A stretch of 64,000 bases of DNA from assembly GCA_025786725.1 (NCBI GenBank), contig JAHLTZ010000017.1:434001-498000 (forward strand). Reading direction: 5' to 3'. Below the pieces are notes generated by a model, which saw only the letters and a list, made by a program, of their open reading frames with translations, had not been told where the DNA came from and did no database searches. Source of the DNA: Syncephalis fuscata S228 (taxonomy: Eukaryota > Fungi > Zoopagomycota). The first letter of the stretch is position 1. Each line of letters begins with the position of its first letter. Below, one piece after another: positions 1 to 42,700 of the stretch. The position numbers and the translations under genes are program-made.

Positions 1-2016
1 TACTAGCTGGATTCTCGGCATAACGCTATTTAATCATTAGTATTGCATGAATAGATTGTATATTGTTTAATAGTTACCTGTAAGAATTGCGTAATATATA
101 AAGTAATGATGTTTGTTGTTTGTTGTGCAAATTGTTCTTGCAATGCTTGGACCAAATCAGTGGCTGCTTTACGACGTGTATCGTTTTCTATATCCCACTA
201 ATGTAAGTATTGATGTATATATATAGTATTTATATCCCTAATTACCTGTGCCTTCTAAGTCCTTGCGAATAAAAGCAATTGGCTCATCTTCAATTAACTC
301 TTCATCTGATTCTATTTGTAGTTATTGTGATGAGTATTCATAGTCATATTGTTACAAGTATTACGTTTAGTGACAGTTGATTTACAGATAGTTTAAATGA
401 CTACTTACCACGCATACTCATATTTTGAAGTACAAGTTTTTCACAAATCTTCTCCATGGTTTCTTCATTGCCAAACATTTCTCGTGTATCTCTCAATTTA
501 ACAACGGTGGCCAAAAACGATAATGCTTTGCACATCAACTAATATTCATCATTAATCTAAATGTCTTATATTCATTGCTTCTACTTATTAATAACAAATT
601 GCTTACAATATCATTCTTGGCATCCAATGAGAGTTTAGTCAACATGGTCCAGATGATGGTAATGAATTCTTGAAGCATCTTGAATTCTTCGGCATATCGT
701 TTGGCATATAGATCAACAATTTCACAAATGCTTGCCCGTAGTTTCTCCAATGGACCTGCTTCATCAACATCCTAAATATTAAATATCCATTTGTTAATGT
801 ACGTAATTGACTATGTCTAATCTTTAGTAATTTAATACAATTGGTACATACTTGAGTCTCTACAATTGGATTGGCGTATAACAGATATTTACGGAAGATG
901 GTCATAAATTCCGTCATGTGATCTTCAAAGAACTCGGGTAAATCTTGTGCATTCAAATTATAAAACACTTTGGCTGACAAAAACATCGATTCAAGCAATG
1001 TTTGAAGTGCTGCTGCATCATTTTCATTCTTATCAATCAATTGATCGGTATTCTATTATAAACATTAGCATTAGTATTGGTATATATACATCAATGATAA
1101 ATCAAATAAATGAATGAAAATATTAATATAATATACTTATTCATATATTACATACCAATACTAAATCAAGGAATGGCTGACCAAATACACCAATAACATA
1201 TTTGATCTCAGAAAAGATGGCATCTGATGCAAAAGCGTGTCGCCATCTAAATAATGAATGTTATGAATATTAATATACACGTTAATCATCACATCCACTT
1301 CTTACCCTTTGAATAACATATGAATTGTCTTAAGAATACCATTATTAATGGTGTAGTCTTGAGGATTAAGCTTTGCAACTAGATTCTAATAATATAATAA
1401 TTGAATTAATATAATATTGATTAGTTAATTGTTTGTCATGATGATTTGACCAGTAATAGGCCATTTACGCGATAAACTTACTGGCACCAAATCAGACCAG
1501 TCTGCTGGAAAGTCATTGTCGGCAATTGTAGCAATAATCTCGCCAATCTGAACCTGAATCCTTGGCACGACCTTGACTAGCACGTCAACAATATTGGCTT
1601 TGATAGCCTGGCGATCCTGTGGTGAAATAGAATCCTGTCCATCCGTCTAAGATGGTTTAAACCAATTAGTCAAGCAGTAACGCATTTAAAATAGCGCTAA
1701 TAGCACTTACTACGCTCCAGTAACGCTTAACGAAATTCTTAAGCAACAATGCAGCAGCAAAGCAAATATTAGGATCTGTGCCATCTTTGACGATCAGTGT
1801 CAAAGTAAGTAGCGGGAATCCAGCATTCTTTTCCACAGACTTTAGAAACTGCTCAGCTTTAGACGTTATAGAAACACGTCAGTTTATTTGCGTTAAGAAT
1901 GGCCAGGTTTGCGTGTTTTTGCTCGCTAGTAACTCACCTTCTCGACGTAGCGCAGGATCCAAGGTTTGGCCGAGGTATTGCGCAAGAACTTGCAGATTTT
2001 GCTCATTAACCTCCAT
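1..2016 (-). CDS. CSE1: Exportin-2 / importin-alpha re-exporter Cse1 (multi-exon, 3' part runs off the window start)
   Basis: ATG at 2016 (MEVNEQNLQVLAQYLGQTLDP), followed by exons encoding LLKNFVKRYW, IADNDFP, KVFYNLNAQDLPEFFEDHM, ICEIVDLYAKRYAEEF and FEDEPIAFIRKDLEG..DTRRKAATDL, all characteristic of Cse1/CAS; GT-AG introns. Confidence 0.93.
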
Positions 2017-2272
2017 GATCTAGACGGGTAAATACGACAAACAATCAAGTTGAAGCAATCAACAAGCGAGTAAGAAATCAAAGAACAGCCACGTACACAC
2101 ACACAGAGACGCACAGTAAAAGATAAAAAGCGACGTGTATCGACAATTATAAACAAAAATCCAAATATCACGTGGTTTTTGAGTAATCTTATTTATTATG
2201 TTGTTTCCTCCTGAATATTACAGTATTTGAACTACGCTAACATTTTCTATATTATAATAAGACAATTTAGAT

Positions 2273-2884
2273 TTATTGTATAATATATAATAATTTATTA
2301 TAATGGCATCTACCAGTTATTGTTTGTTGATAATCATAGTTTGATGGATTAAGCATTCGATCGATCATAAATATTGTGTTGTTTTTATGCCAAGAATTGG
2401 AAATAACCTTGGCGCAATTTACATACAAAGCTTTATCTTTTATATAAAGACGAAGTGGCATGTCCGCATAGTTATTAAAAAGTATATATTTGTCTGGAGA
2501 TAGAACGCTAGGGAAATCAGAATGATTGGCCATGTGATATCTTGCTTGGATATTGGTTATACTACCATGAAAAGCTTTATCCTCTGGTACAAAAGCTATA
2601 CCATTACGGGTATTTAATGGAAACGAGTCGTTGGAAGTGGTTTTAAGTATAATATTGGCAGCATTGAAAAACGAGCCATAACCTTGGTTTCTAGTCTCGT
2701 TGAGTGCTTTTCCTAACGAAAACGGATTATTTTCCCATGGGCCTTCAGAAAATGGAAAATTTCTTTGTTTTGAAGAGTGATCTATGGGCGATTCAGAGAC
2801 GTGCTCTTTAGACTTGGGTTCGGTAGGGACAGCTGTCACTACCGATAATAATAAAAATGCAAGAAATATAACGTGAAACAACAT
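2273..2884 (-). CDS. Small secreted protein with a single FAS1 (fasciclin)-like domain, copy 1 (203 aa, intronless)
   Basis: Signal peptide MLFHVIFLAFLLLSVVTA; FAS1-like motifs IAFVPEDKAF (H1), ARYHM, LYVNCAKVI, IFMIDRML (H2); paralogue at 5779-6366. Confidence 0.75.
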   Translation of the reverse strand: MLFHVIFLAFLLLSVVTAVPTEPKSKEHVSESPIDHSSKQRNFPFSEGPWENNPFSLGKALNETRNQGYGSFFNAANIILKTTSNDSFPLNTRNGIAFVPEDKAFHGSITNIQARYHMANHSDFPSVLSPDKYILFNNYADMPLRLYIKDKALYVNCAKVISNSWHKNNTIFMIDRMLNPSNYDYQQTITGRCHYNKLLYIIQ

Positions 2885-3701
2885 GCTTGAAATGCTAGTG
2901 TGTTATCACAAAAATGGTATATTCGATACAAACAGAATGTAGGTAATGTTTGAAAATACAGAAATGCTAAACAAGAAGGATGCAATAAAGTAAAATTATA
3001 TTGTTGACTTTTTACCATTCATTTATAGTTTTATGCAACTGATGATGTTCAATAATGTTCGTTTAGCCATTAAGCAAAGTCATACTGAGGTTGACAAACT
3101 ACGCCATTGTCTATTGTTGTATTTTGTACCTTTGTGCCTTTGTTGCTCTTCAAATAAATATTAAATGTATTTTCTTTATTTATTTAGCTAATAAATATTA
3201 AATAAAGCTTGTTATTTTAGTTTATATCAATAAATATACATTGTATAATAATTACAAATAACGTAGAAATGGTGTTGACATACAACTATCTAATCGAAAG
3301 GTTAAGATAGTTTCATCATGCGATATATTGTTGAATATTATACTTGTGCAACCATCATGTTGAATGTAAATCACATGCTTCATCATCCATTTCCAGACCT
3401 TCTTTGTTCTCGTATGCACACTTGCAAAATACGTGAGTTGTAACATGCAGTACAACCACATGAACATGGTTTGTTGCCATTCCCAGCAGAGTAGACCTTG
3501 AATACCACATGAACAAAAACAACATTTATTAGTGCAGTATTGCATGATGTATTTATCTAATCTGTTGCTCATTTTATTACTCTGTATTTGCACTCAACAC
3601 TCGTACTATTTGTAACTTTGTTTATTAGAGCTAGCAGGTCTGCTCTACTCTGTCACAATCAATCCGCATCACCAACTACTTACACTTATTACTCGATTAA
3701 C

Positions 3702-5309
3702 ATGCGTTTCCTAAATCCTTCGCATGAACCCACTTCACTTGTGCTATCCCGCGTACTATTCATAGTCATGGGAGTTATTGGACTATCTTTAATTATGAGC
3801 CGAGAAATATCCCACTTTGTTGAGCAAAAGAATGTTTATCAAGTGGAATATTATACCGAACCACTTGCCATGCCAGCCATACTATTTCGATCAATAGTAG
3901 CGCCTAAACTTATGGCTATATATAATATAGCTGTTACTAGTAATTCAGGAGATAGAATATACAGTATAGCTGAAGTCAGCGAACTAATCAAACCCATCAA
4001 ATGGAACAGTAATGTAACCGATTCAAGCTATTCAATTCAAGACTGGAAAATACTTAAAAACTCACAAGTATCTCCATCATTAAATAATTCGATACTTTAT
4101 ATGGCCATGCTAGATCCTAAGATTAGTCATACCTTTGTTCCAAAAACTCAAAATAATCCTGAGAGGGTTAGAATGAATGGCAACAATATTACTGAATTAC
4201 ATATGAGATTTGAAATACGAATTCCTTTAATCGATACGGTTATTACCAAACAACCCTCTGATTTTCAAGCTGAAATATTTGTCATTGACAATCCTGATTT
4301 GCTTAATTCAACAAAGCATGGCAAACCATTTGATTTGGCTACAGTTGATTCGGGATCTCGTTTTATTATGAAAAGTGGAACCAGAACTAAGATTGGTTTT
4401 TTTCAAAGCTACACCGAAAAAGATAATCAAATTGAAAGAATGTACGACGTTGGAGTTTATGAGCAGTGGGGAACGAATTCAACAGCGGTCGAGTTTACTA
4501 TTATTCCTCGCAACAAGCCATCTGCCAATAGAGATAGTTTCATAGTAAGAAAAGAGTTTGCGCAACGCCCCGTTAGTCTATTCCAAATAATTGGTGCTAT
4601 TGGCGGTGCTATATCACTTTTTATTATTATTTTCACTATACTTTTTGGCCAAGGTCGTCTCCGGCCATGGGGGATAATTCAGCAGTATTTTATGCGCAAC
4701 AAGATGCTTAATGTTTTACCACAATCCATGATTAGCATTAAATCTTATTACGATCCCAGATTTAATCATGAATTAGCCACTGATATGAAAGGTTTACATA
4801 TGCCAAATTCAGAACAATATAGCACAGCATTCCGGTCATCAAAGTCCACTGTCAACACATATCGACAAAAGCCACTAAATAATGACATATCACAACGTAT
4901 ACCATCTACACTTGCTAATGACGAGCAATCATATTTATCTACTGCTGATACTCGCGGTAGTGAGATTTGTGAACTCAAGGCAATGATAGTGGCACAAAAA
5001 GCGCAGATGGAAACTCAGAAAATAAGCATGGAAGCACAAATGGCAACTCAAATCAAGCAATTGGTAGTAATGTCCAATCGATTTGCAACACTTGAAGATG
5101 ATCCAGGCATAAACAACAGTACTACGGTTCCGAATAGCTTTGTTTTAGACGATACATGTTTACCAAATTTATCAATGACTCAACATAGTAAATCACCTGC
5201 TTTTACATCCGAAATGTCGTTGCTTCAAACTCGTATGGCAAGCATGGAGGCTTTCCAGTGTCGATTGAAGACATTTTACTTGTCATCTGATTTGTTTAAA
5301 GATGCTTAG
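3702..5309 (+). CDS. Two-transmembrane protein with large ectodomain and coiled-coil cytoplasmic tail, DEG/ENaC-like architecture, copy 1 (535 aa, intronless)
   Basis: First ATG at 3702 (the ORF track starts at an upstream TTG); TM1 VLFIVMGVIGLSLIM, post-TM1 LAMPAILF, TM2 FQIIGAIGGAISLFIIIFTILFG followed by RLRPWGIIQ; heptad-like ELKAMIVAQKAQME. The CDS is certain, the channel assignment is inferred. Confidence 0.8.
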   Translation: MRFLNPSHEPTSLVLSRVLFIVMGVIGLSLIMSREISHFVEQKNVYQVEYYTEPLAMPAILFRSIVAPKLMAIYNIAVTSNSGDRIYSIAEVSELIKPIKWNSNVTDSSYSIQDWKILKNSQVSPSLNNSILYMAMLDPKISHTFVPKTQNNPERVRMNGNNITELHMRFEIRIPLIDTVITKQPSDFQAEIFVIDNPDLLNSTKHGKPFDLATVDSGSRFIMKSGTRTKIGFFQSYTEKDNQIERMYDVGVYEQWGTNSTAVEFTIIPRNKPSANRDSFIVRKEFAQRPVSLFQIIGAIGGAISLFIIIFTILFGQGRLRPWGIIQQYFMRNKMLNVLPQSMISIKSYYDPRFNHELATDMKGLHMPNSEQYSTAFRSSKSTVNTYRQKPLNNDISQRIPSTLANDEQSYLSTADTRGSEICELKAMIVAQKAQMETQKISMEAQMATQIKQLVVMSNRFATLEDDPGINNSTTVPNSFVLDDTCLPNLSMTQHSKSPAFTSEMSLLQTRMASMEAFQCRLKTFYLSSDLFKDA

Positions 5310-5778
5310 TTTAATTACTATCTATAATAAATTATATAATAATATTATCTAACATTAAAATGATTACTAAGTAATAATAGTAGTAAATGTTGAAAATATT
5401 ATATTAAACTATTAATATGCAGAGACATAGAAGATACGGTATATGAGAAACAAATCAAAAAAGATCATTACAACAAAATAATACGGATAGTTATATCAGT
5501 TAAATGAACATTTATGCTCTGAATAATTAAATGTATTTTATTACGATGTTTTGACTTAAATGTTGTAATTACATTTATTCTAGCTTACAAATACATTTTT
5601 AGTATAAACATTTAGTCAAGTCAGAGTAGCATCAAGTTGAGTGCATTATTCACATTGGATCAGGTCTCTAGTGATGATTCTATTAGAAAATAATATAATG
5701 GATAGTGCTATTTGATATTCAATAAATAAAGCATGCCAATTCAAGTTTGTATATATTATATACAATATTTTATTATGA

Positions 5779-6366
5779 TCAACATTCTCCTTTGACTGCC
5801 CGACCATAATCATCGTCTCCTGGGCTAAGCATTCGGTCAATCAAAAATACTATATTGCTATTGTTCGGATTGATAATCGTATTAATAATTCTTGCACAAT
5901 TTACATACATAGATCCATTTTTTGGACGAATGTAAAGCTTCCAGCCTGCATAGCTTTCGACAGCACTATGGGTGCCTCGCTCCAAAGACATGGGAAAGCC
6001 ATTACGAGAGGTCATATAATATTTCGCATGTAGCTCGTCCAAAGTGCCGCTAAAAGTATTGTCCACTGGTACAAATGCAATGCTATTTTTGGAATACATA
6101 GTACGCTTTTTGTTAGACTCGTATAAAAATAAATCATGAATTATGCTATAAAACAGCGCGCCACCAAAAGAACTAGTTGATGCTATAGCGCTTCCAAAAG
6201 AAAATGGAATATCTATCCAATTTTTTTCGTATTTTGGATCTTGTATAAAAGCTGAATTCGTGTCAACAAAAGTTCGATCAGCGCGTTTTTCAAGTGTGGG
6301 TTTAATAGGCCCTGCTGCTACAACCAAAAATAAAACAAGTGCAAGAAATATAACATGCAATAACAT
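5779..6366 (-). CDS. Small secreted FAS1-like protein, copy 2 (195 aa, intronless)
   Basis: Signal peptide MLLHVIFLALVLFLVVAA, dibasic EKR site, IAFVPVDNTF, AKYYM, MYVNCARII, VFLIDRML. Confidence 0.75.
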   Translation of the reverse strand: MLLHVIFLALVLFLVVAAGPIKPTLEKRADRTFVDTNSAFIQDPKYEKNWIDIPFSFGSAIASTSSFGGALFYSIIHDLFLYESNKKRTMYSKNSIAFVPVDNTFSGTLDELHAKYYMTSRNGFPMSLERGTHSAVESYAGWKLYIRPKNGSMYVNCARIINTIINPNNSNIVFLIDRMLSPGDDDYGRAVKGEC

Positions 6367-7157
6367 GCTTGAAATGATGGAGTGCTATCACAATAAATGG
6401 TATGCTTGATATAAACAAAATGCAGATAATGCTTGAAAATACAAAAATGCTAAACAAGAAGGATGCAATGAAATGAATGCGAAGTGAAGAGCATACTACC
6501 AACTTTGTACCATTCGTTCGTAGCTTTATACAAAGGATGGTATTCAATAATAACTGCCTAACTATTGGTCAAAGTCCATAGTGAGATTGGCAAATACGTC
6601 ATTGCCTATTTATTGTGCCTTTGCACTTTTAATTGTTTTCATTTCAGTAGATATTAAATAAAGCTTGTTATTTTAGTTTATATCAATAAATATACATTGT
6701 ATAATAATTACAAATAACGTAGAAATGGTGTTGACATACAACTATCTAATCGAAAGGTTAAGATAGTTTCATCATGCGATATATTGTTGAATATTATACT
6801 TGTGCAACCATCATGTTGAATGTAAATCACATGCTTCATCATCCATTTCCAGACCTTCTTTGTTCTCGTATGCACACTTGCAAAATACGTGAGTTGTAAC
6901 ATGCAGTACAACCACATGAACATGGTTTGTTGCCATTCCCAGCAGAGTAGACCTTGAATACCACATGAACAAAAACAACATTTATTAGTGCAGTATTGCA
7001 TGATGTATTTATCTAATCTGTTGCTCATTTTATTACTCTGTATTTGCACTCAACACTCGTACTATTTGTAACTTTGTTTATTAGAGCTAGCAGGTCTGCT
7101 CTACTCTGTCACAATCAATCCGCATCACCAACTACTTACACTTATTACTCGATTAAC

Positions 7158-8741
7158 ATGCGTTTCCTAAATCCTTCGCATGAACCCACTTCACTTGTGC
7201 TATCCCGCGTACTATTCATAGTCATGGGAGTTATTGGACTATCTTTAATTATGAGCCGAGAAATATCCCACTTTGTTGAGCAAAAGAATGTTTATCAAGT
7301 GGAATATTATACCGAACCACTTGCCATGCCAGCCATACTATTTCGATCAATAGTAGCACCTGGATCTCTTGATATATATAGTGTAGCTGTTACCAGTAAT
7401 TCAGGATATAAGAGATATAGTGCGCGTAACATCAAAGAAATACTTAAACTTATCAAATGGAACAGCAATGTAACCGATTCAAGCTACCCAATCCAAGACT
7501 GGAAGTTTTTTAATAGTAGACAAGTATCTCCATCATTAAATAATTCGATACTTTATATGGCCATGCTAGATCCTAAGATTAGTCATACCTTTGTTCCAAA
7601 AACTCAAAATAATCCTGAGAGGGTTAGAATGAATGGCAACAATATTACTGAATTACATATGAGATTTGAAATACGAATTCCTTTAATCGATACGGTTATT
7701 ACCAAACAACCCTCTGATTTTCAAGCTGAAATATTTGTCATTGACAATCCTGATTTGCTTAATTCAACAAAGCATGGCAAACCATTTGATTTGGCTACAG
7801 TTGATTCGGGATCTCGTTTTATTATGAAAAGTGGAACCAGAACTAAGATTGGTTTTTTTCAAAGCTACACCGAAAAAGATAATCAAATTGAAAGAATGTA
7901 CGACGTTGGAGTTTATGAGCAGTGGGGAACGAATTCAACAGCGGTCGAGTTTACTATTATTCCTCGCAACAAGCCATCTGCCAATAGAGATAGTTTCATA
8001 GTAAGAAAAGAGATTGCACGATACCCTGTTAGTTTATTTCAAGCAATTGGTGCAGTTGGCGGTGCTATATCACTTTTTGCTGCTTTGTTTACTATTCTTT
8101 TTGGCCAACGTCGCCTTCGACCTTGGGGAATTATTCAACGGTACTTTGTACGTAACAGAATGCTTAGTCTTTTGCCGAAATCTATGGTCAGCATCAAATC
8201 TGACTACCAGCCTAAATTTAATCACGACTCAGTCACTGATATGACATTCTTAAATATGCCAAATCCAGAACAACGCGGTACAGCATCCTGGGTGCCAAAG
8301 CCAACCAGTAATTTAAATCAACAACAAGCATCAAATAATGACACATCCCAGTCTATGACGTCTGTATTGATTAACAGTGAACAGCAAAATTTACCTAATA
8401 TTCATCCTCGTGCTGATGAAATACGTGAGCTTAAAGCAATGATGATAACACAGAAGGCGCAAATGGAGGCGCAAATGAAGCAATTTACAATAGTTTCAAA
8501 CCGGCTTGCAACACTTGAAAATGATCCAGGAACAAACAACAATACTATGATTCTAGATAAGCTGGCTCCAGATAGCACATGTCTACCTAATACTTCAATG
8601 GCTCATCATAACAACTCATTTGTATCTTCACGCAGCGCAGCATCAGTTGAAACTCGCTTGTCAAACCTTGAATCTTTTCAGTATCGATTGGGAACATTTT
8701 ATCTGTCATCCGACTTGTTTAAAGACACTTCATTTAATTAA
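7158..8741 (+). CDS. Two-transmembrane DEG/ENaC-like protein, copy 2 (527 aa, intronless)
   Basis: Paralogue of 3702-5309 at offset 3456; TM2 FQAIGAVGGAISLFAALFTILFG-RRLRPWGIIQ. Confidence 0.8.
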   Translation: MRFLNPSHEPTSLVLSRVLFIVMGVIGLSLIMSREISHFVEQKNVYQVEYYTEPLAMPAILFRSIVAPGSLDIYSVAVTSNSGYKRYSARNIKEILKLIKWNSNVTDSSYPIQDWKFFNSRQVSPSLNNSILYMAMLDPKISHTFVPKTQNNPERVRMNGNNITELHMRFEIRIPLIDTVITKQPSDFQAEIFVIDNPDLLNSTKHGKPFDLATVDSGSRFIMKSGTRTKIGFFQSYTEKDNQIERMYDVGVYEQWGTNSTAVEFTIIPRNKPSANRDSFIVRKEIARYPVSLFQAIGAVGGAISLFAALFTILFGQRRLRPWGIIQRYFVRNRMLSLLPKSMVSIKSDYQPKFNHDSVTDMTFLNMPNPEQRGTASWVPKPTSNLNQQQASNNDTSQSMTSVLINSEQQNLPNIHPRADEIRELKAMMITQKAQMEAQMKQFTIVSNRLATLENDPGTNNNTMILDKLAPDSTCLPNTSMAHHNNSFVSSRSAASVETRLSNLESFQYRLGTFYLSSDLFKDTSFN

Positions 8742-9216: not shown

Positions 9217-10644
9217 ATGACCATTCAAAGCAAAGAACACGGTATTGAAGAGCCGATCTGCCAATTCAGGCCACCTGAAGGACTTGAATTAAAGTCGGCC
9301 TATGTCACGCCGCTGGATATGATTATGCCGATGACGTATAATCGTCATATTTACTTTTATCGTAATCCAGATCCGACAACCGAGTTTATGCCTACAGAAC
9401 AACTGGCTGCTGGTCTCGAAAAAGCACTGACCTATTATCCAGTGCTCTATGCCGGTATTACAACACTGCCTGACCTTCAGCGTGTATTTGAGCCTACCGG
9501 AGCACCGATACCATTGTACGAGCAACAAGTTGACTATGGCTTTGAGAAATTTGAGCCACATTGGCGCCATAAAGATATACCGACTAAACTTGATGTACTA
9601 TCTGTGCGAGCAGATATTGCCAATGCACCAATGTTAGCCGCTCGTATTACACGACTACGCAATAATGAAGGCGTTGTTGTGACTATCGCTGTGCATCATG
9701 TCGTCGCGGACGGGTTCGGCGTGGAAATCTTCATGGAAACCTGGACGGCTTGTGTACGCGGTGAAGAGCCGTCACCGTTACCGTGCCACGAACGATCACT
9801 TATATCGCCGACGGGTCCACCATCCGAGGAGCATCCCGAATACTATTGGGTCAAACCAGAGTACGCTTCGTTTGAATATGCATTTACACCGTCTGAAGCG
9901 GCAGCCAATGCAGCTGGGGAAACTCCACCACCGCCAATGAAAACGGCAATCTTTCGTGTATCGGCAGAGCATCTTGCCCAGCTTAAACGAGAAGCGTTAC
10001 TTATGCCAGCCCCTGACGCTGACCTCGAGGATGTCTCGGACGTTGCATGGATATCAAGCGGCGATGCACTTACTGCACTTATTTGGCAGGCTATAACGCG
10101 CGCTGGCCATACATCGGGCCAGCTGCAGTCTAGCTTCCATATCGCGGCCAATTCACGCGCTCGTTTTGAGCCTCCATTGCCGTACAACTATTTTGGCAAC
10201 GCATCATTTCGCATCAATCCCGTTGCCATGACTGAAAAGCTAAAGCAAATGCCTCTTGGCTATTTGGCTCGGCTTATTCGCAAACGAAACAACGAAATGG
10301 ACGGCAATCGTTTACAATCGGCGGTTAATTGGCTTGCAGCACTTCCTGAGCACCAACGTCTACGCAGTCCAATTCAAGTCATGTTTGGCATTGATTTTGC
10401 ACTGGCCAATCTTGCTTTCCCGCAGATGTATGACGTGAATTTTGGTTATGGACGACCAGTACGTCGTCGCTTGCCTTATGACAATTGGAATGGCGGCGCT
10501 GTCATCTTTAGTCTGCCACCAAGCACAGCTGATGGCCCAGCCGGACAAGAAGGTGTTGAGTTTTACCTTGGTATGCTAGCCGAGAATTTTAATCAACTAT
10601 TAGCCGATGAGGAATTTATTCGATTTGCCGAATATATTGGCTAA
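9217..10644 (+). CDS. CoA-dependent acyltransferase, BAHD/'Transferase' family (Tri101-like), intronless
   Basis: Catalytic HxxxDG (HHVVADG), SSGDALTALIWQAI, NSRARFEPPLPYNYFGNA, and DFGWG-like DVNFGYG. Confidence 0.9.
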   Translation: MTIQSKEHGIEEPICQFRPPEGLELKSAYVTPLDMIMPMTYNRHIYFYRNPDPTTEFMPTEQLAAGLEKALTYYPVLYAGITTLPDLQRVFEPTGAPIPLYEQQVDYGFEKFEPHWRHKDIPTKLDVLSVRADIANAPMLAARITRLRNNEGVVVTIAVHHVVADGFGVEIFMETWTACVRGEEPSPLPCHERSLISPTGPPSEEHPEYYWVKPEYASFEYAFTPSEAAANAAGETPPPPMKTAIFRVSAEHLAQLKREALLMPAPDADLEDVSDVAWISSGDALTALIWQAITRAGHTSGQLQSSFHIAANSRARFEPPLPYNYFGNASFRINPVAMTEKLKQMPLGYLARLIRKRNNEMDGNRLQSAVNWLAALPEHQRLRSPIQVMFGIDFALANLAFPQMYDVNFGYGRPVRRRLPYDNWNGGAVIFSLPPSTADGPAGQEGVEFYLGMLAENFNQLLADEEFIRFAEYIG

Positions 10645-25504: not shown

Positions 25505-27130
25505 ATGTTTCTATATAATGTTGAATAGCACAGGGACACTTGCACTATTACTGTGCTTTGTAATATCTGTCTTTGGTATGACCACATTTGTGTGGGTAAT
25601 CAAACATTTCAATATTACACACAAGATTTATTTAAAGTTAAAGTTATGCCGTATATAACTCGTGGTGTCTAGTAAGCGCTGTGTTCAATCAAAATGCAAC
25701 ATGCAAAATAGTGTTATCCGTTCTTGACACAGTTGATCTGCATTGAATAATGTAAAAATCTGATAATATCACAAGTGTAATTATTGTTATTGATGCAATA
25801 AAAGCCAAAAAATGCGGCTATACAACAATTGCCCATGTAAGCTATCATCACCAGCATTGCATTAATATGTTATAATTGTTTGTGTAACTAGACAGGAGTT
25901 GCAGTCTTTGAACTTGGACAGTATTTAAGCGACACAAGCGGCTTTTCTATTGATACAGCGCTTTACACATCTCATGCAAAGCTGGCCTTATTTTTGGTGC
26001 ATATCCCGTCATGCTTTATGCGACGCACAGGGTCAGTTTCTACGAAGGTGCATCATCAGTCAACATTGCATTGCTACCGTATGATAATCATCAGATTGTT
26101 GTAAATGCAAGCAATAAATTAGGTGCAGCAGTCATTGTAACAGTTGAAGAAGTTGGTTAAATCGTTTTAATATTGGCTATTATATTATGCACACTAGCTA
26201 ATGTATAGGCTGGTGTATTTGCAGAGCCAGGACCTTGAGATAATGTCTTTCTATCAACTGGCTATCGTGTATTTATATATTGCACGCTGACTGTATTTAT
26301 AAACATTATATTGTACAGTTTTATAGTTTTATATCGCTTGATTAGAACAAAATAATAATAATCACTAAGCAACAAGTTATAGTATATGTTTCTGCGTTGT
26401 GCGCTGCAATATGTAAGATGAGCTCAATATTATTAATATCAGCTAGAGTGCTAATCAGTTGGTTTTATATAATAGTATGTGCATCAGGATTCGCGCTTAG
26501 ACTAAACAGCCTGATTTATAAATGGATAAACCTTTTTCAAGAAGTTTTCATAAATACTGGATTTTATACATTGATACTACTATGGTATGTTGTATACTAT
26601 AATGAAATATTTATTAATTCTATCAATGCCTATTATTAACAATAATAATAAATAGGCACTCAATTGCAATCAGTGTGCAAACAAATCAAGAGAGACTGCA
26701 TTAGTAAGTGAAAACAGGAAATTAGCAATATTTACCACTAGCATGCTAGGTGACAAAACTATGTGCACTATTTCTATTAAGCTATTTTATGTTACTTGCC
26801 GCAGATATAATGAAATTTAGGGAAACTTGGCGCTATGGCCCTGAAACCAAACCTACTTGCGTAGTTTTAGTTAAACTATCATATATTGTACGCACTGGTG
26901 CGCTTCTTTTTATTATTGCTTTACGTCCAAAGTCTAATGTCCAGTGCAAAGATAAAGTAGCCATTAAAATAAACAACAACAAAAAATACTACAGTCTTGG
27001 TGCAAAATACACATGATAACTATACAGTCTATGCCAGTGCACTTATGTCATCGAACGTCGATTCAGATGCAGACCCGATATATGATGACAGCACGTATTA
27101 CAACACGACTATTATATACAACTAAACAAT
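25505..27130 (+). pseudogene. Decayed gene for a signal-peptide + extracellular domain + multi-pass (7TM-like) membrane protein
   Basis: Fragments in order: LALLLCFVISVFG (signal), GNQTFQYYTQDLF, AKKCGYTTIAH, intron, VIVTVEE, intron, AEPGP*DNVFLSTGYRVFIYCTLTVF, FINTGFYTLILLW, TKLCALFLLSYF, LSYIVRTGALLFIIALRP; interrupted by several stops and frameshifts. Confidence 0.65.
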
Positions 27131-27479
27131 AATAACGCAGTAAGGTAAAAATGAATACATTATTAAGAAATAACTAGTAATGTGTACATTTATATCAAGT
27201 ACATACTACCTTGTGTTATGAATATAAAAGCCATGTATACCTTTAAAATATACAACTATTTGAATTTTCAGCTTCAACTCACAATATTATATTTACGCAG
27301 TATTTATATAGTTTATTACCAATTCAAGCGCTGTACAATAAAACTAGTCGATAGTAATATAGATGATTTGTTTTGATATAATGAAATAATTGTTATTTAG
27401 TATTTACGCTTAAATATAAATACCATAAAAGCAACGCTATCTTTACAGTATGCACGTGTTAGCTCTACTGGACCACTAT

Positions 27480-28220
27480 CACAGATTTGACTTGGAATAA
27501 ATACTAAACATTGTACAGCTAATTTATAAACTAAAACGACTACAAAAATGGCAATTGAGCAAATGACAGATAGTCAAATACAAAAAGTAAAGAATTTATT
27601 GCGTAACAGTGTTAATTATTGGTGCTATTGTACATATCTAAACAAAAAAGATGGCAGTTTATTCGCTAATGAGAGTCGAAAAAAGCTTTTAAAACTTATG
27701 CTATGAATGTTTACAACAATTTGTATGCTCATTTCTGTGCTTGTTTGACAATTCATAAAATGTCGCGTCTAAAGTATAAATAAATAGGATACATAGCGAA
27801 AATAATATTTCACAACAATCCATCACAACACTGGATTAGGAAAAGTGGTGTAAAAATGAAAAGATCAATACCACATTACAAATTATAATGCTTACAAAGA
27901 AGTATTAACGGGCAAGATTGTTCAAATGGCAGAACAAAAAAGACAATAGGTAGAAAAGTAGTAATGAATATAGTTAATTTCACTTTATACTTTGGTTTAC
28001 TATGCCATCATAGATCATGCTAGCAATAGCTTTGCAGTAGAAATCCATAGTAAAAACAAAGTATACAGCGGGATCTTTGTAGTATACACTCAACACAACA
28101 TAAAAACAAGTTAGAAATGTGCCTATCGTGTCAATAAAGCTGCCAAAAGCAATGATCGAAGTGATGAAAGTGATTTGCAAAAAGAGGCCAGATTACAAAA
28201 GAGCAATGCAAGTACATAGT
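27480..28220 (-). pseudogene. Highly decayed hydrophobic/membrane-protein gene fragment
   Basis: ORF 27980-28180 is almost all hydrophobic helices, and further hydrophobic fragments with stops lie downstream; it starts just beyond direct repeat copy B, and its first ~40 bp are echoed at 24190-24225. Confidence 0.35.
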
Positions 28221-39732: not shown

Positions 39733-42700
39733 ATGACTACACAAAAGGTATTATTGTATAGAATGACGGTCATTATAGAGAGTATGAGTCTAATAAATAG
39801 TATAGAGAAAACAACCACGCAAAAGTAGTAATACTGACAAGACTGATGACCATACGAATGAATTGCTACCTAACTCGACTCATAATGACAATTCCTGTGT
39901 ACTAGTTAAAGACACCACTATATTAGCTATGGACACTAAAGAAAAGCCGAGTAGTTCAGTATCAACTCGTTCGTCTCATTCAAAAAAGTTACGACCTGTC
40001 ACTCAGGTATTTATTATGGATATATAGTATATTTAATAGACTGTATTTTTTAATTATTAATGTTGTAGCGTCGATGGATCATGCCTGACTTTGATGATAA
40101 TGATGATAACAGAAATAGTCATAGTGGCCAACATCAAGATGTACCGGAGAATGATAAGAATGAAGAAGAAGAAGAAAATGACAGTACATGGTTCAGTAGT
40201 TCATCAAATATACGACGACGTAGAAATAAACGGAAATTGAATAGCACATCTATGAATATATCTGCACTACAATCAGCATTTCGACCTCTTGATACTACAA
40301 TGGCTAGTTCATTGGCTGCAACACCGACTACACCATCAGATCTACTATGGGTTGATAAATATGCACCAACTACAGTGGTGAGAGTGATTAAGCTGTTATA
40401 TAGTATATACTAATAGAGTGAATAGTCTGAATTGGCTATTCATAAGCGTAAAGTTGCTAGTGTGCGCCAATGGTTAGAAGCAGCTTATGATCCACGATCA
40501 AGTAGACAACAAGTAAATAAACGGTTGATGTTACGATAGAGATGGACTAATCTATTTATTTGTACGTAGAAATTACTTGTGTTAACTGGTCCATGTGGCA
40601 GTGGAAAGACAGCAACTGTACGGGCATTAGCACATGAAATGAATATTACTATTAATGAGTGGATTACACCCATTATTTCTACTAATCTACGTCATCACAG
40701 TCAATTATTAACACAAGGTAACTAATTAATTAACTATTGATTACAACTGTTTAATGTTAATAAACATGGATAGATGTCAATAATGATTATACATCATTAA
40801 CTCAAAGATTTAGTGAATTTATGATGAGTGCTGATAAATATACACCATTGGCATTACCCAGTTTAGCTAGTGGATCATTACCATTGTCATCTACTCGGAC
40901 ATCAGAGACTACGTCCAATGCAAAGACACTATTGCTTATTGAAGATTTACCTAATCTTAGACATGAAACTACATCACAAACATTTGAACAAATTCTACTA
41001 CGGTTTATAAATGGAAGGATGTGTGGTAAACCAGCGATTATTATCCTATCCGATGTATCTGATAAACAAGATGCTGACGAAGTTGCTGAACATTACGGAA
41101 GAGTACGGACTGCATTGGCTGGTCGGCCATCTCTACCTATTAGTATTACTAATTCACCTCAATGCCAAGAGATTAGGTAATACTACATACTATATACTGT
41201 ATTCAATGGTATACTCATAGTCTATGACATGCTAGATTTAATCCAATTGCGCCTACTTTTCTCAATAAGGCTCTCTATCGTATAGTGAATCGAGAACGGC
41301 CACAGCTGATTGAACAAGCTTCAGCATTATCGGCGCTACTGCAATCGATTGTCTCCAATGTGAACGGAGATATACGCGCTGCTATTAATAAACTGCAATT
41401 CCAGATTATTAGTGAACCTACGGGCCGCTTATCATCCTCTACAATCATTACGTCACAACAAGACGAAACGCTCTCTTATTTCCATGCGCTGGGTAAAATT
41501 CTGTACAATAAACGTAAGTAGAAAGCGATAGAAAGCGATAGAATTTCTGTCCCGGGCGAGCATTAATGCAGTATGCATATGCAGGTAAACCACAACATGA
41601 TTTAAAAAATACTGGTTTGGCCGATGGTGGCCGTAACAAGTCTAACTACAAGGATGGTGAAAGTATGGTCGAACCAGAGGTAGCGTCATATTGCATATTG
41701 CTATAACATCTCTACTGATTACTTTGTCTATATACGTAGCGAGTGGTTACTGCAGCTGGATTGGACCGCGAACAATTTATGCTATTTCTACATCAGAACT
41801 ATGCACTGTTTACCGACGATATCGAGACATGTAGCGCAGCGATAGCACGGCAAAGTATGGCCGACACCATGCTTGGTCATTGGTCGGTAAGTAAACAATG
41901 CCGTTCAACATGAACATTAAGGCCTTGTAAGTCTACACGCGTTTTTACCACTTACTGATCGCCATGGCATGACATATAGACGCGAGCACAAATGCTGCCC
42001 TATGCAACATTGGCATCACTACGTGGATATATGTGGGAAACCCGTAACAGAAAGCCGTCGTCTGGTTTTCAACCATTGTACAAACCGGATCTATGGAGCG
42101 TGCGACGTGCTCAGCAAAGTTATGCTACTAAATTGGCACCCGTCATTGTCGAGTTAAATGCAACGACCCCGACTTTGCGTGCAGGAGGTAAGGCGACATC
42201 GATAATGACAACGAGGACGTGTTTAACTGTCAGTTCATATCATTTGTTCCAATAGATTCTACGGTTAGTGGTAATTACAATTTGGATGTACTGCCTTATC
42301 TACGTCAACGAAAACGAACAATGACACGAAATAAACAAACTGGGTTAAGAACCTATGGTGAAGAGACATACTGGGTGCATCCAACTGCAGCGAAAATGCT
42401 TAGCGAAGGTGAGTCAGTCAGTAACATGACCATGAACGTGATTATTATGCTGTGATGATGGACACTAATATTGCCATTCACTACCCCGCATTATGTAGAT
42501 GCGCTAGCATTTCTGGCATCATCATCGATATTTCAAAAAATACGGCCTTCCCCAAGTATGCTATCAAGTACGGAAAATATAGACGTGGATGGAGATGAAC
42601 CGGCCAAGGCAGATGCAACAATGACGCCAGCTTGTGATAAAGTAATCTCTAATATTTGTCATCAAGATAGAAGTAGTCATCGTAGTGATCACAATGGTAG

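Follow-up and report, generated by a model that had tools for sequence, protein, structure and literature searches.

A conserved two-gene module of Syncephalis fuscata pairing a secreted FAS1-like protein with a predicted PAC/DEG-ENaC-fold membrane protein: a candidate for contact recognition

In basidiomycetes, pheromone/receptor (P/R) loci combine linked ligand-precursor and receptor genes in tandem sub-loci, with old allele divergence and conserved flanks; the receptor is a seven-transmembrane (7-TM) G protein-coupled receptor and the ligand a lipopeptide. A second kind of linked pair is known from Neurospora, where cwr-1 and cwr-2, two genes in tight linkage, encode a secreted or cell-wall protein and a multi-TM membrane protein, fall into highly diverged haplogroups and carry specificity in exposed loops (PMC9550227). 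CWR-1 belongs to the AA11 chitin monooxygenases, and CWR-2 combines eight TM regions with PF11915 domains (PMC9550227). Here, we describe a linked pair of secreted and membrane protein genes in Syncephalis fuscata, a zoopagalean parasite of other moulds with a 29.4 Mb assembly (33% G+C). The stretch of DNA that was analyzed (64,000 nucleotides, C79:434001-498000; hereafter, the window) carries two units in tandem, repeated at an interval of 3456 bp and each consisting of a FAS1-like gene on the minus strand and a gene on the plus strand for a protein with two TM helices (2-TM). The original prediction had described two divergent FAS1-like/2-TM pairs, about 800 bp apart from start codon to start codon and duplicated as a unit, and the open reading frames (ORFs) were found placed as described, with start codons 817 bp apart in unit 1 and 791 bp apart in unit 2. 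All four ORFs run without interruption.

As in cwr-1/cwr-2, divergence between versions of the Syncephalis loci is limited to the extracellular parts of a linked secreted and membrane pair. Unlike cwr-1/cwr-2, however, the Syncephalis modules are multi-copy and their proteins unrelated (a Pfam search of the window proteins gave no AA11 or PF11915 match), with two versions per locus at three loci in one assembly and no fusion phenotype known in Syncephalis. The module also differs from P/R loci in having no indicated mating role. Mating in zygomycetes is governed by sexP/sexM and trisporoids.

We propose that each unit represents a conserved two-gene cell-surface module of Syncephalis that would be transcribed bidirectionally from a shared promoter of ~0.8 kb. 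The membrane partner would be a 2-TM protein with a glycosylated, cysteine (Cys)-free ectodomain and the fold of the trimeric PAC/DEG-ENaC channels, and the FAS1 protein would be its extracellular partner, whether as ligand, auxiliary subunit or tether. Such a pair may sense contact between cells, whether the other cell belongs to a self hypha, a non-self hypha or the host mould. The module may have spread via tandem and segmental duplication, its promoters and 5' parts being homogenized through gene conversion and the extracellular parts of both partners being retained as old, highly diverged variants. We hold this reading, i.e., a co-expressed surface pair with FAS1 as the extracellular partner of a trimeric channel-like receptor for contact recognition, tentatively and as close to an even call; we infer both the physical binding of the pair and its role in recognition.

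Linkage of the two genes recurs throughout the genome. Family searches in S. fuscata returned at least 50 matches for the 2-TM protein and 11 for the FAS1-like protein, and the FAS1-like copies lie head-to-head with a 2-TM gene at every locus (two each on contigs C79, C42 and C279, and one each on C85, C239, C223 and C116), although some have decayed. The C42 version of FAS1 gene 1 (C42 piece 1737-2471, minus strand) has a frameshift in the signal-peptide region and large insertions relative to the window copy, and is either a pseudogene or an assembly error. In S. plumigaleata, the orthologous pair occupies a single-copy locus between housekeeping genes, where orientation is kept and the spacer measures 788 bp; its proteins are 37% (2-TM) and 27% (FAS1, hhalign probability 99.5) identical to the window copies. 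An environmental contig carries the head-to-head FAS1-like/2-TM arrangement too. Recurrence of the linkage, by which the original prediction had proposed to judge the pairing, thus extends to about 10 loci in this genome and to two other Syncephalis-type genomes. The pairing is conserved, and apparently not a by-product of one duplication.

A gene tree placed the FAS1-linked 2-TM members, including the S. plumigaleata gene, in one clade (support 100/99). In the sister 2-TM clade, the downstream gene on the same strand encodes a small secreted CAP protein (CAP/PR-1-like, 152-155 aa; Pfam CAP, E-value 4.5e-9). This second linkage was found in S. fuscata (C79:56000-63300 and C128, also C2 and C24), S. 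plumigaleata (E 2e-22) and Thamnocephalis (E 7e-7). As FAS1 and CAP are unrelated folds and each is tied to its own 2-TM clade, a functional relation between membrane protein and secreted partner can be argued, if short of proof of contact.

The region between the two start codons is better conserved than the genes that it separates. Among paralogous units, the intergenic region is 77-96% identical, compared with 55-66% for the FAS1 and ectodomain coding sequence of the same unit pairs (80-81% in the closest pair). The 2-TM-proximal 500 bp of this region in unit 2 are 100% identical to unit 1, and short blocks persist in S. plumigaleata and the environmental contig. Neither an Rfam match nor a conserved ORF was found within the intergenic region. 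A 113-aa Cys-rich ORF with a GTG start (3252-3593 and 6708-7049, minus strand) was considered and rejected; a 2-bp indel breaks it in paralogues, no contigs of the presumed RNA run described next cover it, and it is probably no gene.

Contigs from a public run presumed to be RNA lie on all four genes and contain no joints. They cover 2437-2972 in FAS1-like gene 1 and 5786-6388 in FAS1-like gene 2, and copy-specific contigs with zero mismatches cover 4527-5081 in the first 2-TM copy and 7332-7549 in the second, the latter including that copy's own variable patch (see below). Coverage is zero over 3150-3549, 5350-5749 and 6550-7149. This combination of unjointed coverage on the genes and gaps between them is consistent with four expressed genes free of introns and with a shared promoter that is silent, in agreement with the earlier description of the genes as intact and intronless.

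Sequence variation is concentrated in the parts of both proteins that are expected outside the cell. From end to end, three small contigs run collinearly with internal stretches of larger ones: C42 (23.4 kb) with window 569-23637, C239 (9.3 kb) with C223:367243-376607, and C128 (15.6 kb) with C79:53768-69353. Identity profiles computed per 200-250-bp segment showed that flanking genes and intergenic promoters of these pairs are 96-100% identical (92-94% beside FAS1-like gene 1), while identity falls to 69-91% in the ectodomain-coding part and to 66-82% in the variable half of the partner gene (FAS1 or CAP). Synonymous divergence (dS) between versions is 0.36-0.62 in the ectodomains, 0.04-0.19 in the tails and about 0.01 in the flanks, and the ratio of nonsynonymous to synonymous divergence (dN/dS) is 0.3-0.6. 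Within the FAS1-like genes, the most variable part is the pro/N segment, with dN/dS values of 0.95 and 1.6 (about 120 sites). Such high dS beside almost identical non-coding DNA cannot stem from recent mutation, and hence the variants must be old, either through balancing selection or by being imported through conversion. The second 2-TM gene of the C128 locus, which has no partner of its own, is 100% identical between versions.

A 2-kb control stretch (window 40000-42000) occurs once in the assembly, which speaks against a generally diploid assembly. Second copies are therefore limited to these loci, which would be expected had only the haplotype segments of greatest divergence escaped collapse. 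In the presumed RNA run, all nine variant letters agree with the C42 version, which indicates that both versions were present in one sample. Many family members lie on very small contigs of 9-23 kb or else at the ends of contigs (C85, C116, C67, C239, C128 and C42); being repeated or heterozygous, such loci are difficult to assemble.

Comparison of the two window units reveals a mosaic. The FAS1-like paralogues share 34% protein identity, bearing out the earlier claim that the secreted partners differ strongly. The 2-TM proteins are 76% identical in amino acids, with residues 1-68 identical, residues 122-285 nearly identical, and 23 of the 39 amino-acid differences within aa 1-345 carried by aa 69-121. 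The claim that the membrane partners differ in one discrete patch consequently holds for part of the protein; from TM2 onward, the copies also diverge strongly (60-76% nucleotide identity, tail dS about 0.87). Two tracts on either side of the patch (Table 1) show a dS of 0 to 0.02 between units, and the upstream one spans the promoter-proximal half, the 5' untranslated region, the N-terminus, TM1 and the first strands. On C42, the regions that are homogenized on C79 differ between the two copies (dS 0.13-0.58). The near-identity of the C79 copies beside the divergence of the C42 copies points to recent gene conversion on one haplotype.

The patch itself can be read in this light. Between the two C79 copies, the stretch over aa 67-140 has a dS of 0.35 and a dN/dS of 0.59, and each C79 patch resembles its counterpart on C42 (dN 0.10-0.14) more than it does the patch of the neighbouring unit (dN 0.20). 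Positive selection protecting the patch was considered and rejected, as pairwise Nei-Gojobori dN/dS values range from 0.34 to 0.61 and never exceed 1. On these comparisons, the patch seems better explained as a stretch that escaped recent conversion between tandem copies. It lies right after the first two strands, which, going by chain order, we take to be the place of the variable 'finger' in DEG/ENaC.

Predicted structure places the 2-TM protein among known channels. In the AlphaFold2 model of 2-TM protein 1 (aa 1-343; predicted local distance difference test [pLDDT] 81), a 10-residue N-terminus precedes TM1 (aa 11-40), and TM2 comprises aa 293-315; hydropathy peaks at aa 10-37 and 290-320. 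The ectodomain is beta-rich with five N-glycosylation sequons (NxS/T), and no cysteine occurs between TM1 and TM2 in either window copy. A HEP motif before TM1 is conserved, as is an LFG....PWG motif after TM2, which is followed by a tail of ~190 aa that includes a Gln-rich, apparently coiled-coil stretch (read by eye) and ends in FYLSSDLF. Foldseek against PDB returned PAC (ASOR/TMEM206) first (E 6e-12 to 1e-8, target TM-score up to 0.54), followed by PDPNaC1 and ASIC (E 3e-8 to 1e-6), with P2X far weaker. A Foldseek-independent structure search (VIA), which took in 48,161 PDB representatives, gave PAC, ENaC, ASIC, FaNaC, BRTNaC1 or PDPNaC1 at all of ranks 1-11 (Z 10.1-12.8). PAC reached Z 12.8 over 240 aligned residues, ENaC 11.6-11.7, ASIC 11.6, FaNaC 11.2, and BRTNaC1 and PDPNaC1 10.7 each; unrelated helical proteins reach Z 8 at most. 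As modeled, the 2-TM protein has the PAC/DEG-ENaC channel fold, and we infer that it may form trimers and conduct ions.

DEG/ENaC channels are treated as animal proteins with few protist outliers, and PAC is known from vertebrates. Sequence searches reach the former by way of a wider fungal family. A search of 1.84 billion representatives with the 2-TM profile yielded 260 proteins at E 0.001 or better. Among the matches that were looked up, the full-length ones came from Syncephalis, Thamnocephalis and unnamed metagenome contigs, and most others align best around TM2 and the LFG....PWG motif. A direct search of 5.8 billion proteins with the window families returned Syncephalis only. The wider 2-TM family includes members from Glomeromycotina, Mucorales, Mortierella and a chytrid, all annotated 'hypothetical', and hhalign aligned the Syncephalis family with it over almost the whole length (probability 99.9, E 1.5e-34). 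Against PDB sequences, the wider-family profile matched BRTNaC1 (E 2e-7), FaNaC (8.5e-5) and PDPNaC1 (2.6e-3) and, more weakly, a pickpocket-type channel (0.03) and ENaC alpha (0.11). The best of these alignments (BRTNaC1 and PDPNaC1) run from TM1 and the Pro motif that follows it through the pre-TM2 strand to the GG motif of TM2. ASC was the only Pfam family matched by more than one of 95 wider-family members (6/95, subthreshold, best E 9e-4).

Taken together with the fold, this transitive profile link suggests a distant homology of the 2-TM protein to DEG/ENaC; we read it as a divergent branch of the superfamily in fungi, its ectodomain being compact and similar to that of PAC in size. The label 'DEG/ENaC-like', which the original prediction had drawn from topology, was thereby upheld by both kinds of search. 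Common to the 2-TM protein and DEG/ENaC (ASIC, ENaC, FaNaC, BRTNaC1 and PDPNaC1) are two TM helices flanking a large beta-rich ectodomain, a short N-terminus inside the cell, a Pro motif immediately behind TM1 and a GG motif where TM2 begins (the motifs as aligned by HMMER). Canonical DEG/ENaC channels are also defined by a Cys-rich ectodomain with conserved disulfides, a G/S-x-S selectivity motif in TM2 and an HG motif before TM1. The fungal 2-TM protein differs from them in lacking a Pfam ASC match and in its Cys-free ectodomain; GxS is absent ~8 residues on from the GG motif, and HEP stands in place of HG. The conserved LFG....PWG motif and the tail of ~190 aa, on the other hand, are features of the 2-TM protein that are missing from the animal channels. 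PAC is the best structural match, with a compact ectodomain of similar size and without large Cys-rich domains. However, PAC has no sequence-level match to the 2-TM family: its chains were absent from the PDB-sequence profile searches with both the window family and the wider family, Pfam TMEM206 matched neither the window proteins nor any of the 95 wider-family members, and the profile link leads to DEG/ENaC instead. We know of no co-encoded partner of PAC.

In a 2023 phylogenetic survey whose BLAST searches covered Fungi as well, the DEG/ENaC candidates reported were limited to holozoans, a single alveolate and a single stramenopile (PMC10507113). No fungal homologues of DEG/ENaC or PAC were found described in the literature searched, outside of which lay most subscription journals. 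In the ESM Atlas, clusters of about 66-190 Mucoromycota proteins share the 2-TM fold (TM-score 0.55-0.67). In one Mucoromycota cluster with 193 members, this fold is fused to Kelch/galactose-oxidase-type beta-propellers in proteins of ~1000 aa, and the ectodomain family hence has multi-domain relatives.

The secreted partner can be assigned to the FAS1 fold. FAS1-like gene 2 scored 23.7 bits against Pfam Fasciclin (PF02469), above the gathering cut-off of 22, while gene 1 fell just below it (19.5 bits); the profile of the family (nine members) matches FAS1 domains of TGFBIp and periostin (E 4e-7 to 4e-6). An AlphaFold2 model of FAS1-like protein 2 (pLDDT 69 overall, 82-92 per 10-residue block over aa 111-160 and lower toward the C-terminus) returned FAS1 domains of TGFBIp, periostin, stabilin-2, S. 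pombe Fsc1 and MPT70 in Foldseek, with target TM-scores up to 0.67. Every copy starts with a hydrophobic, signal-like leader, followed by a poorly conserved, disordered pro/N segment of ~40 aa and a single FAS1 domain. Two Cys in the domain are invariant in the family (157 and 193 in gene 1), and no C-terminal anchor signal is visible in the sequences. In most copies, those from S. plumigaleata and the environmental contig among them, a dibasic KR/RR site stands ~10 residues ahead of a conserved Trp (within aa 20-50). The site suggests kexin-type removal of a hypervariable propeptide. The protein shares the single FAS1 fold and the conserved motifs in its C-terminal half with FAS1 proteins known from fungi and animals (TGFBIp, periostin, S. 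pombe Fsc1 and MPT70). Unlike these, it is very short (one domain), has a hypervariable and often dibasic pro/N segment and a conserved Cys pair, and always adjoins a 2-TM gene. At the sensitivity of the 5.8-billion-protein search, the FAS1-like family is confined to Syncephalis.

Several observations weigh against a cognate surface pair with a channel-like receptor. On C79, FAS1 proteins that are 34% identical face ectodomains differing only in aa 69-121, and cognate specificity, if any, must hence lie in this patch. Several 2-TM genes, inside the FAS1 clade and elsewhere, have no secreted neighbour, and a linked partner is therefore not strictly needed. The transcript data consist of Logan contigs of one public run, whose RNA nature is the tool's guess and whose library kind is unrecorded. 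The small collinear contigs are haplotig-like, but could be recent segmental duplications rather than haplotypes. As for the channel, Pfam assigned both window 2-TM proteins to no family (no ASC [PF00858] at E up to 1 and no TMEM206 [PF15122]), and the profile of the window family found no channel among sequences of solved structures, which makes the homology to DEG/ENaC transitive. The missing GxS filter, Cys-rich ectodomain and HG motif render channel activity uncertain.

The main rival reading is that the two genes are co-regulated and their products do not interact. Both might be needed at a shared stage (germination, host contact or haustorium formation) and be subject to host pressure on exposed proteins, with the FAS1 protein serving as a wall protein or adhesin of a general kind and the 2-TM protein acting by itself. 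In favour of this stand the conserved promoter, the coverage of all four genes by the presumed RNA run and the many 2-TM family members without a secreted neighbour, and the wider fungal 2-TM family has no known partner. A complex prediction (three copies of the ectodomain, aa 30-305, with the FAS1 domain, aa 50-195) gave a partner score of 0.00 in both runs; it was made without controls and left the supplied alignments unused, and the tool classes 0.00 as no verdict, such that the result does not support binding but counts neither way. Against it, two unrelated secreted folds, FAS1 and CAP, each keep a stable linkage to a 2-TM clade of their own in different species, and hypervariability affects both linked genes and spares a neighbouring 2-TM gene that has no partner. 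We regard this explanation as possible, though on the unlikely side.

The surface-pair reading can be sharpened further. In animals, DEG/ENaC channels respond to extracellular peptides, proteins, protons or force, which gate or tune them. The Syncephalis proteins might be polymorphic ligand-gated channels of DEG/ENaC type, each opened or tuned by its co-encoded FAS1 or CAP protein or by a released propeptide, with allele matching serving the recognition of self, non-self or host. We consider this specific version doubtful and offer it as speculation. The suggestion of a cognate ligand and receptor stands as far as recurrent linkage, the conserved promoter, coverage in the presumed RNA run and joint hypervariability at three loci are concerned, but binding and cognate specificity did not gain the same support.

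A different role for the 2-TM protein would be that of an ER-Golgi escort or cargo receptor with an ERV41/ERGIC-like topology, which exports the co-encoded secreted protein. The two groups have in common two TM helices around a beta-rich lumenal domain, and in the ESM Atlas, ERGIC/ERV clusters (PF07970) matched the model with TM-scores of 0.48-0.51, near that of TMEM206 (0.48). In PDB, by contrast, no ERV41-type structure appeared among the top matches, where PAC and DEG/ENaC occupied ranks 1-11. The wider-family profile likewise matches DEG/ENaC and not ERV, and there was no match to Pfam COPIIcoated_ERV. ERV41/46 are also unlike proteins with a long conserved cytosolic tail, and we therefore consider an escort function improbable.

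Effector/immunity or toxin-antidote function, in which the secreted protein would harm non-kin or the host and the membrane protein would protect the producer, had been raised in the original prediction. In its favour, the genes for a secreted and a membrane protein are tightly linked and vary together. Yet FAS1 and CAP are adhesion or lipid-binding folds and not toxin folds, the membrane protein has a channel fold and not a known immunity-protein fold, and there are no signs of a selfish element; with neither protein resembling a toxin, the proposal is unsupported and very unlikely. Least likely of all is a functionally meaningless, accidental juxtaposition copied by segmental duplication, because, although the S. 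fuscata copies form a single clade that could stem from one ancestral unit, two other genomes retain both the orientation and the spacing of ~0.8 kb (down to the low protein identities in S. plumigaleata), the promoter is conserved more than the coding sequence, and the sister 2-TM clade has a parallel linkage to CAP.

To our knowledge, no recognition genes have been described in this group of haustorial mycoparasites. A conserved secreted pairing with localized hypervariability would make the module a concrete, testable candidate for contact recognition in such a fungus. Independently of its partner, the 2-TM protein belongs to a family that is large, lacks annotation and occurs in early-diverging fungi (Zoopagales, Mucorales, Mortierella, Glomeromycotina and a chytrid); fold and profile link it to DEG/ENaC. 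This family shifts the question of the origin of the superfamily, and its simple, Cys-free and intronless members may be of use for biophysics. If the proteins were indeed partner-gated channels, they would represent the first functional DEG/ENaC-type signaling system beyond animals and the unicellular relatives of animals, and would give recognition in fungi a new molecular basis.

Table 1. Features of the two tandem units, in window coordinates
Feature	Position	Strand	Details
FAS1-like gene 1	2273-2884	-	203 aa; ORF, Pfam, family alignment, contig of the presumed RNA run
Shared intergenic region of unit 1, putative bidirectional promoter	2885-3701	.	817 bp
Gene-conversion tract	3192-3905	.	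100% identical to 6648-7361
2-TM gene 1	3702-5309	+	535 aa from first ATG
Variable ectodomain patch of 2-TM gene 1 (aa 69-121)	3906-4064	+	Counterpart in copy 2 at 7362-7520
Second near-identical tract	4065-4556	.	Counterpart at 7521-8012
FAS1-like gene 2	5779-6366	-	195 aa
Shared intergenic region of unit 2	6367-7157	.	791 bp
2-TM gene 2	7158-8741	+	527 aa from first ATG; paralogue of gene 1

Directly downstream of unit 2 lies an intact gene (9217-10644, plus strand) for a 475-aa acyltransferase of the BAHD/Transferase family (Pfam Transferase, E 1.5e-39). Its G+C content is ~50% inside a region of ~33%, and a second copy on contig C42 is 98-100% identical. Further along the window, positions 26000-28000 belong to a different multi-copy family, of which at least 20 copies, diverged to 68-83% identity, are scattered across many contigs of the genome.

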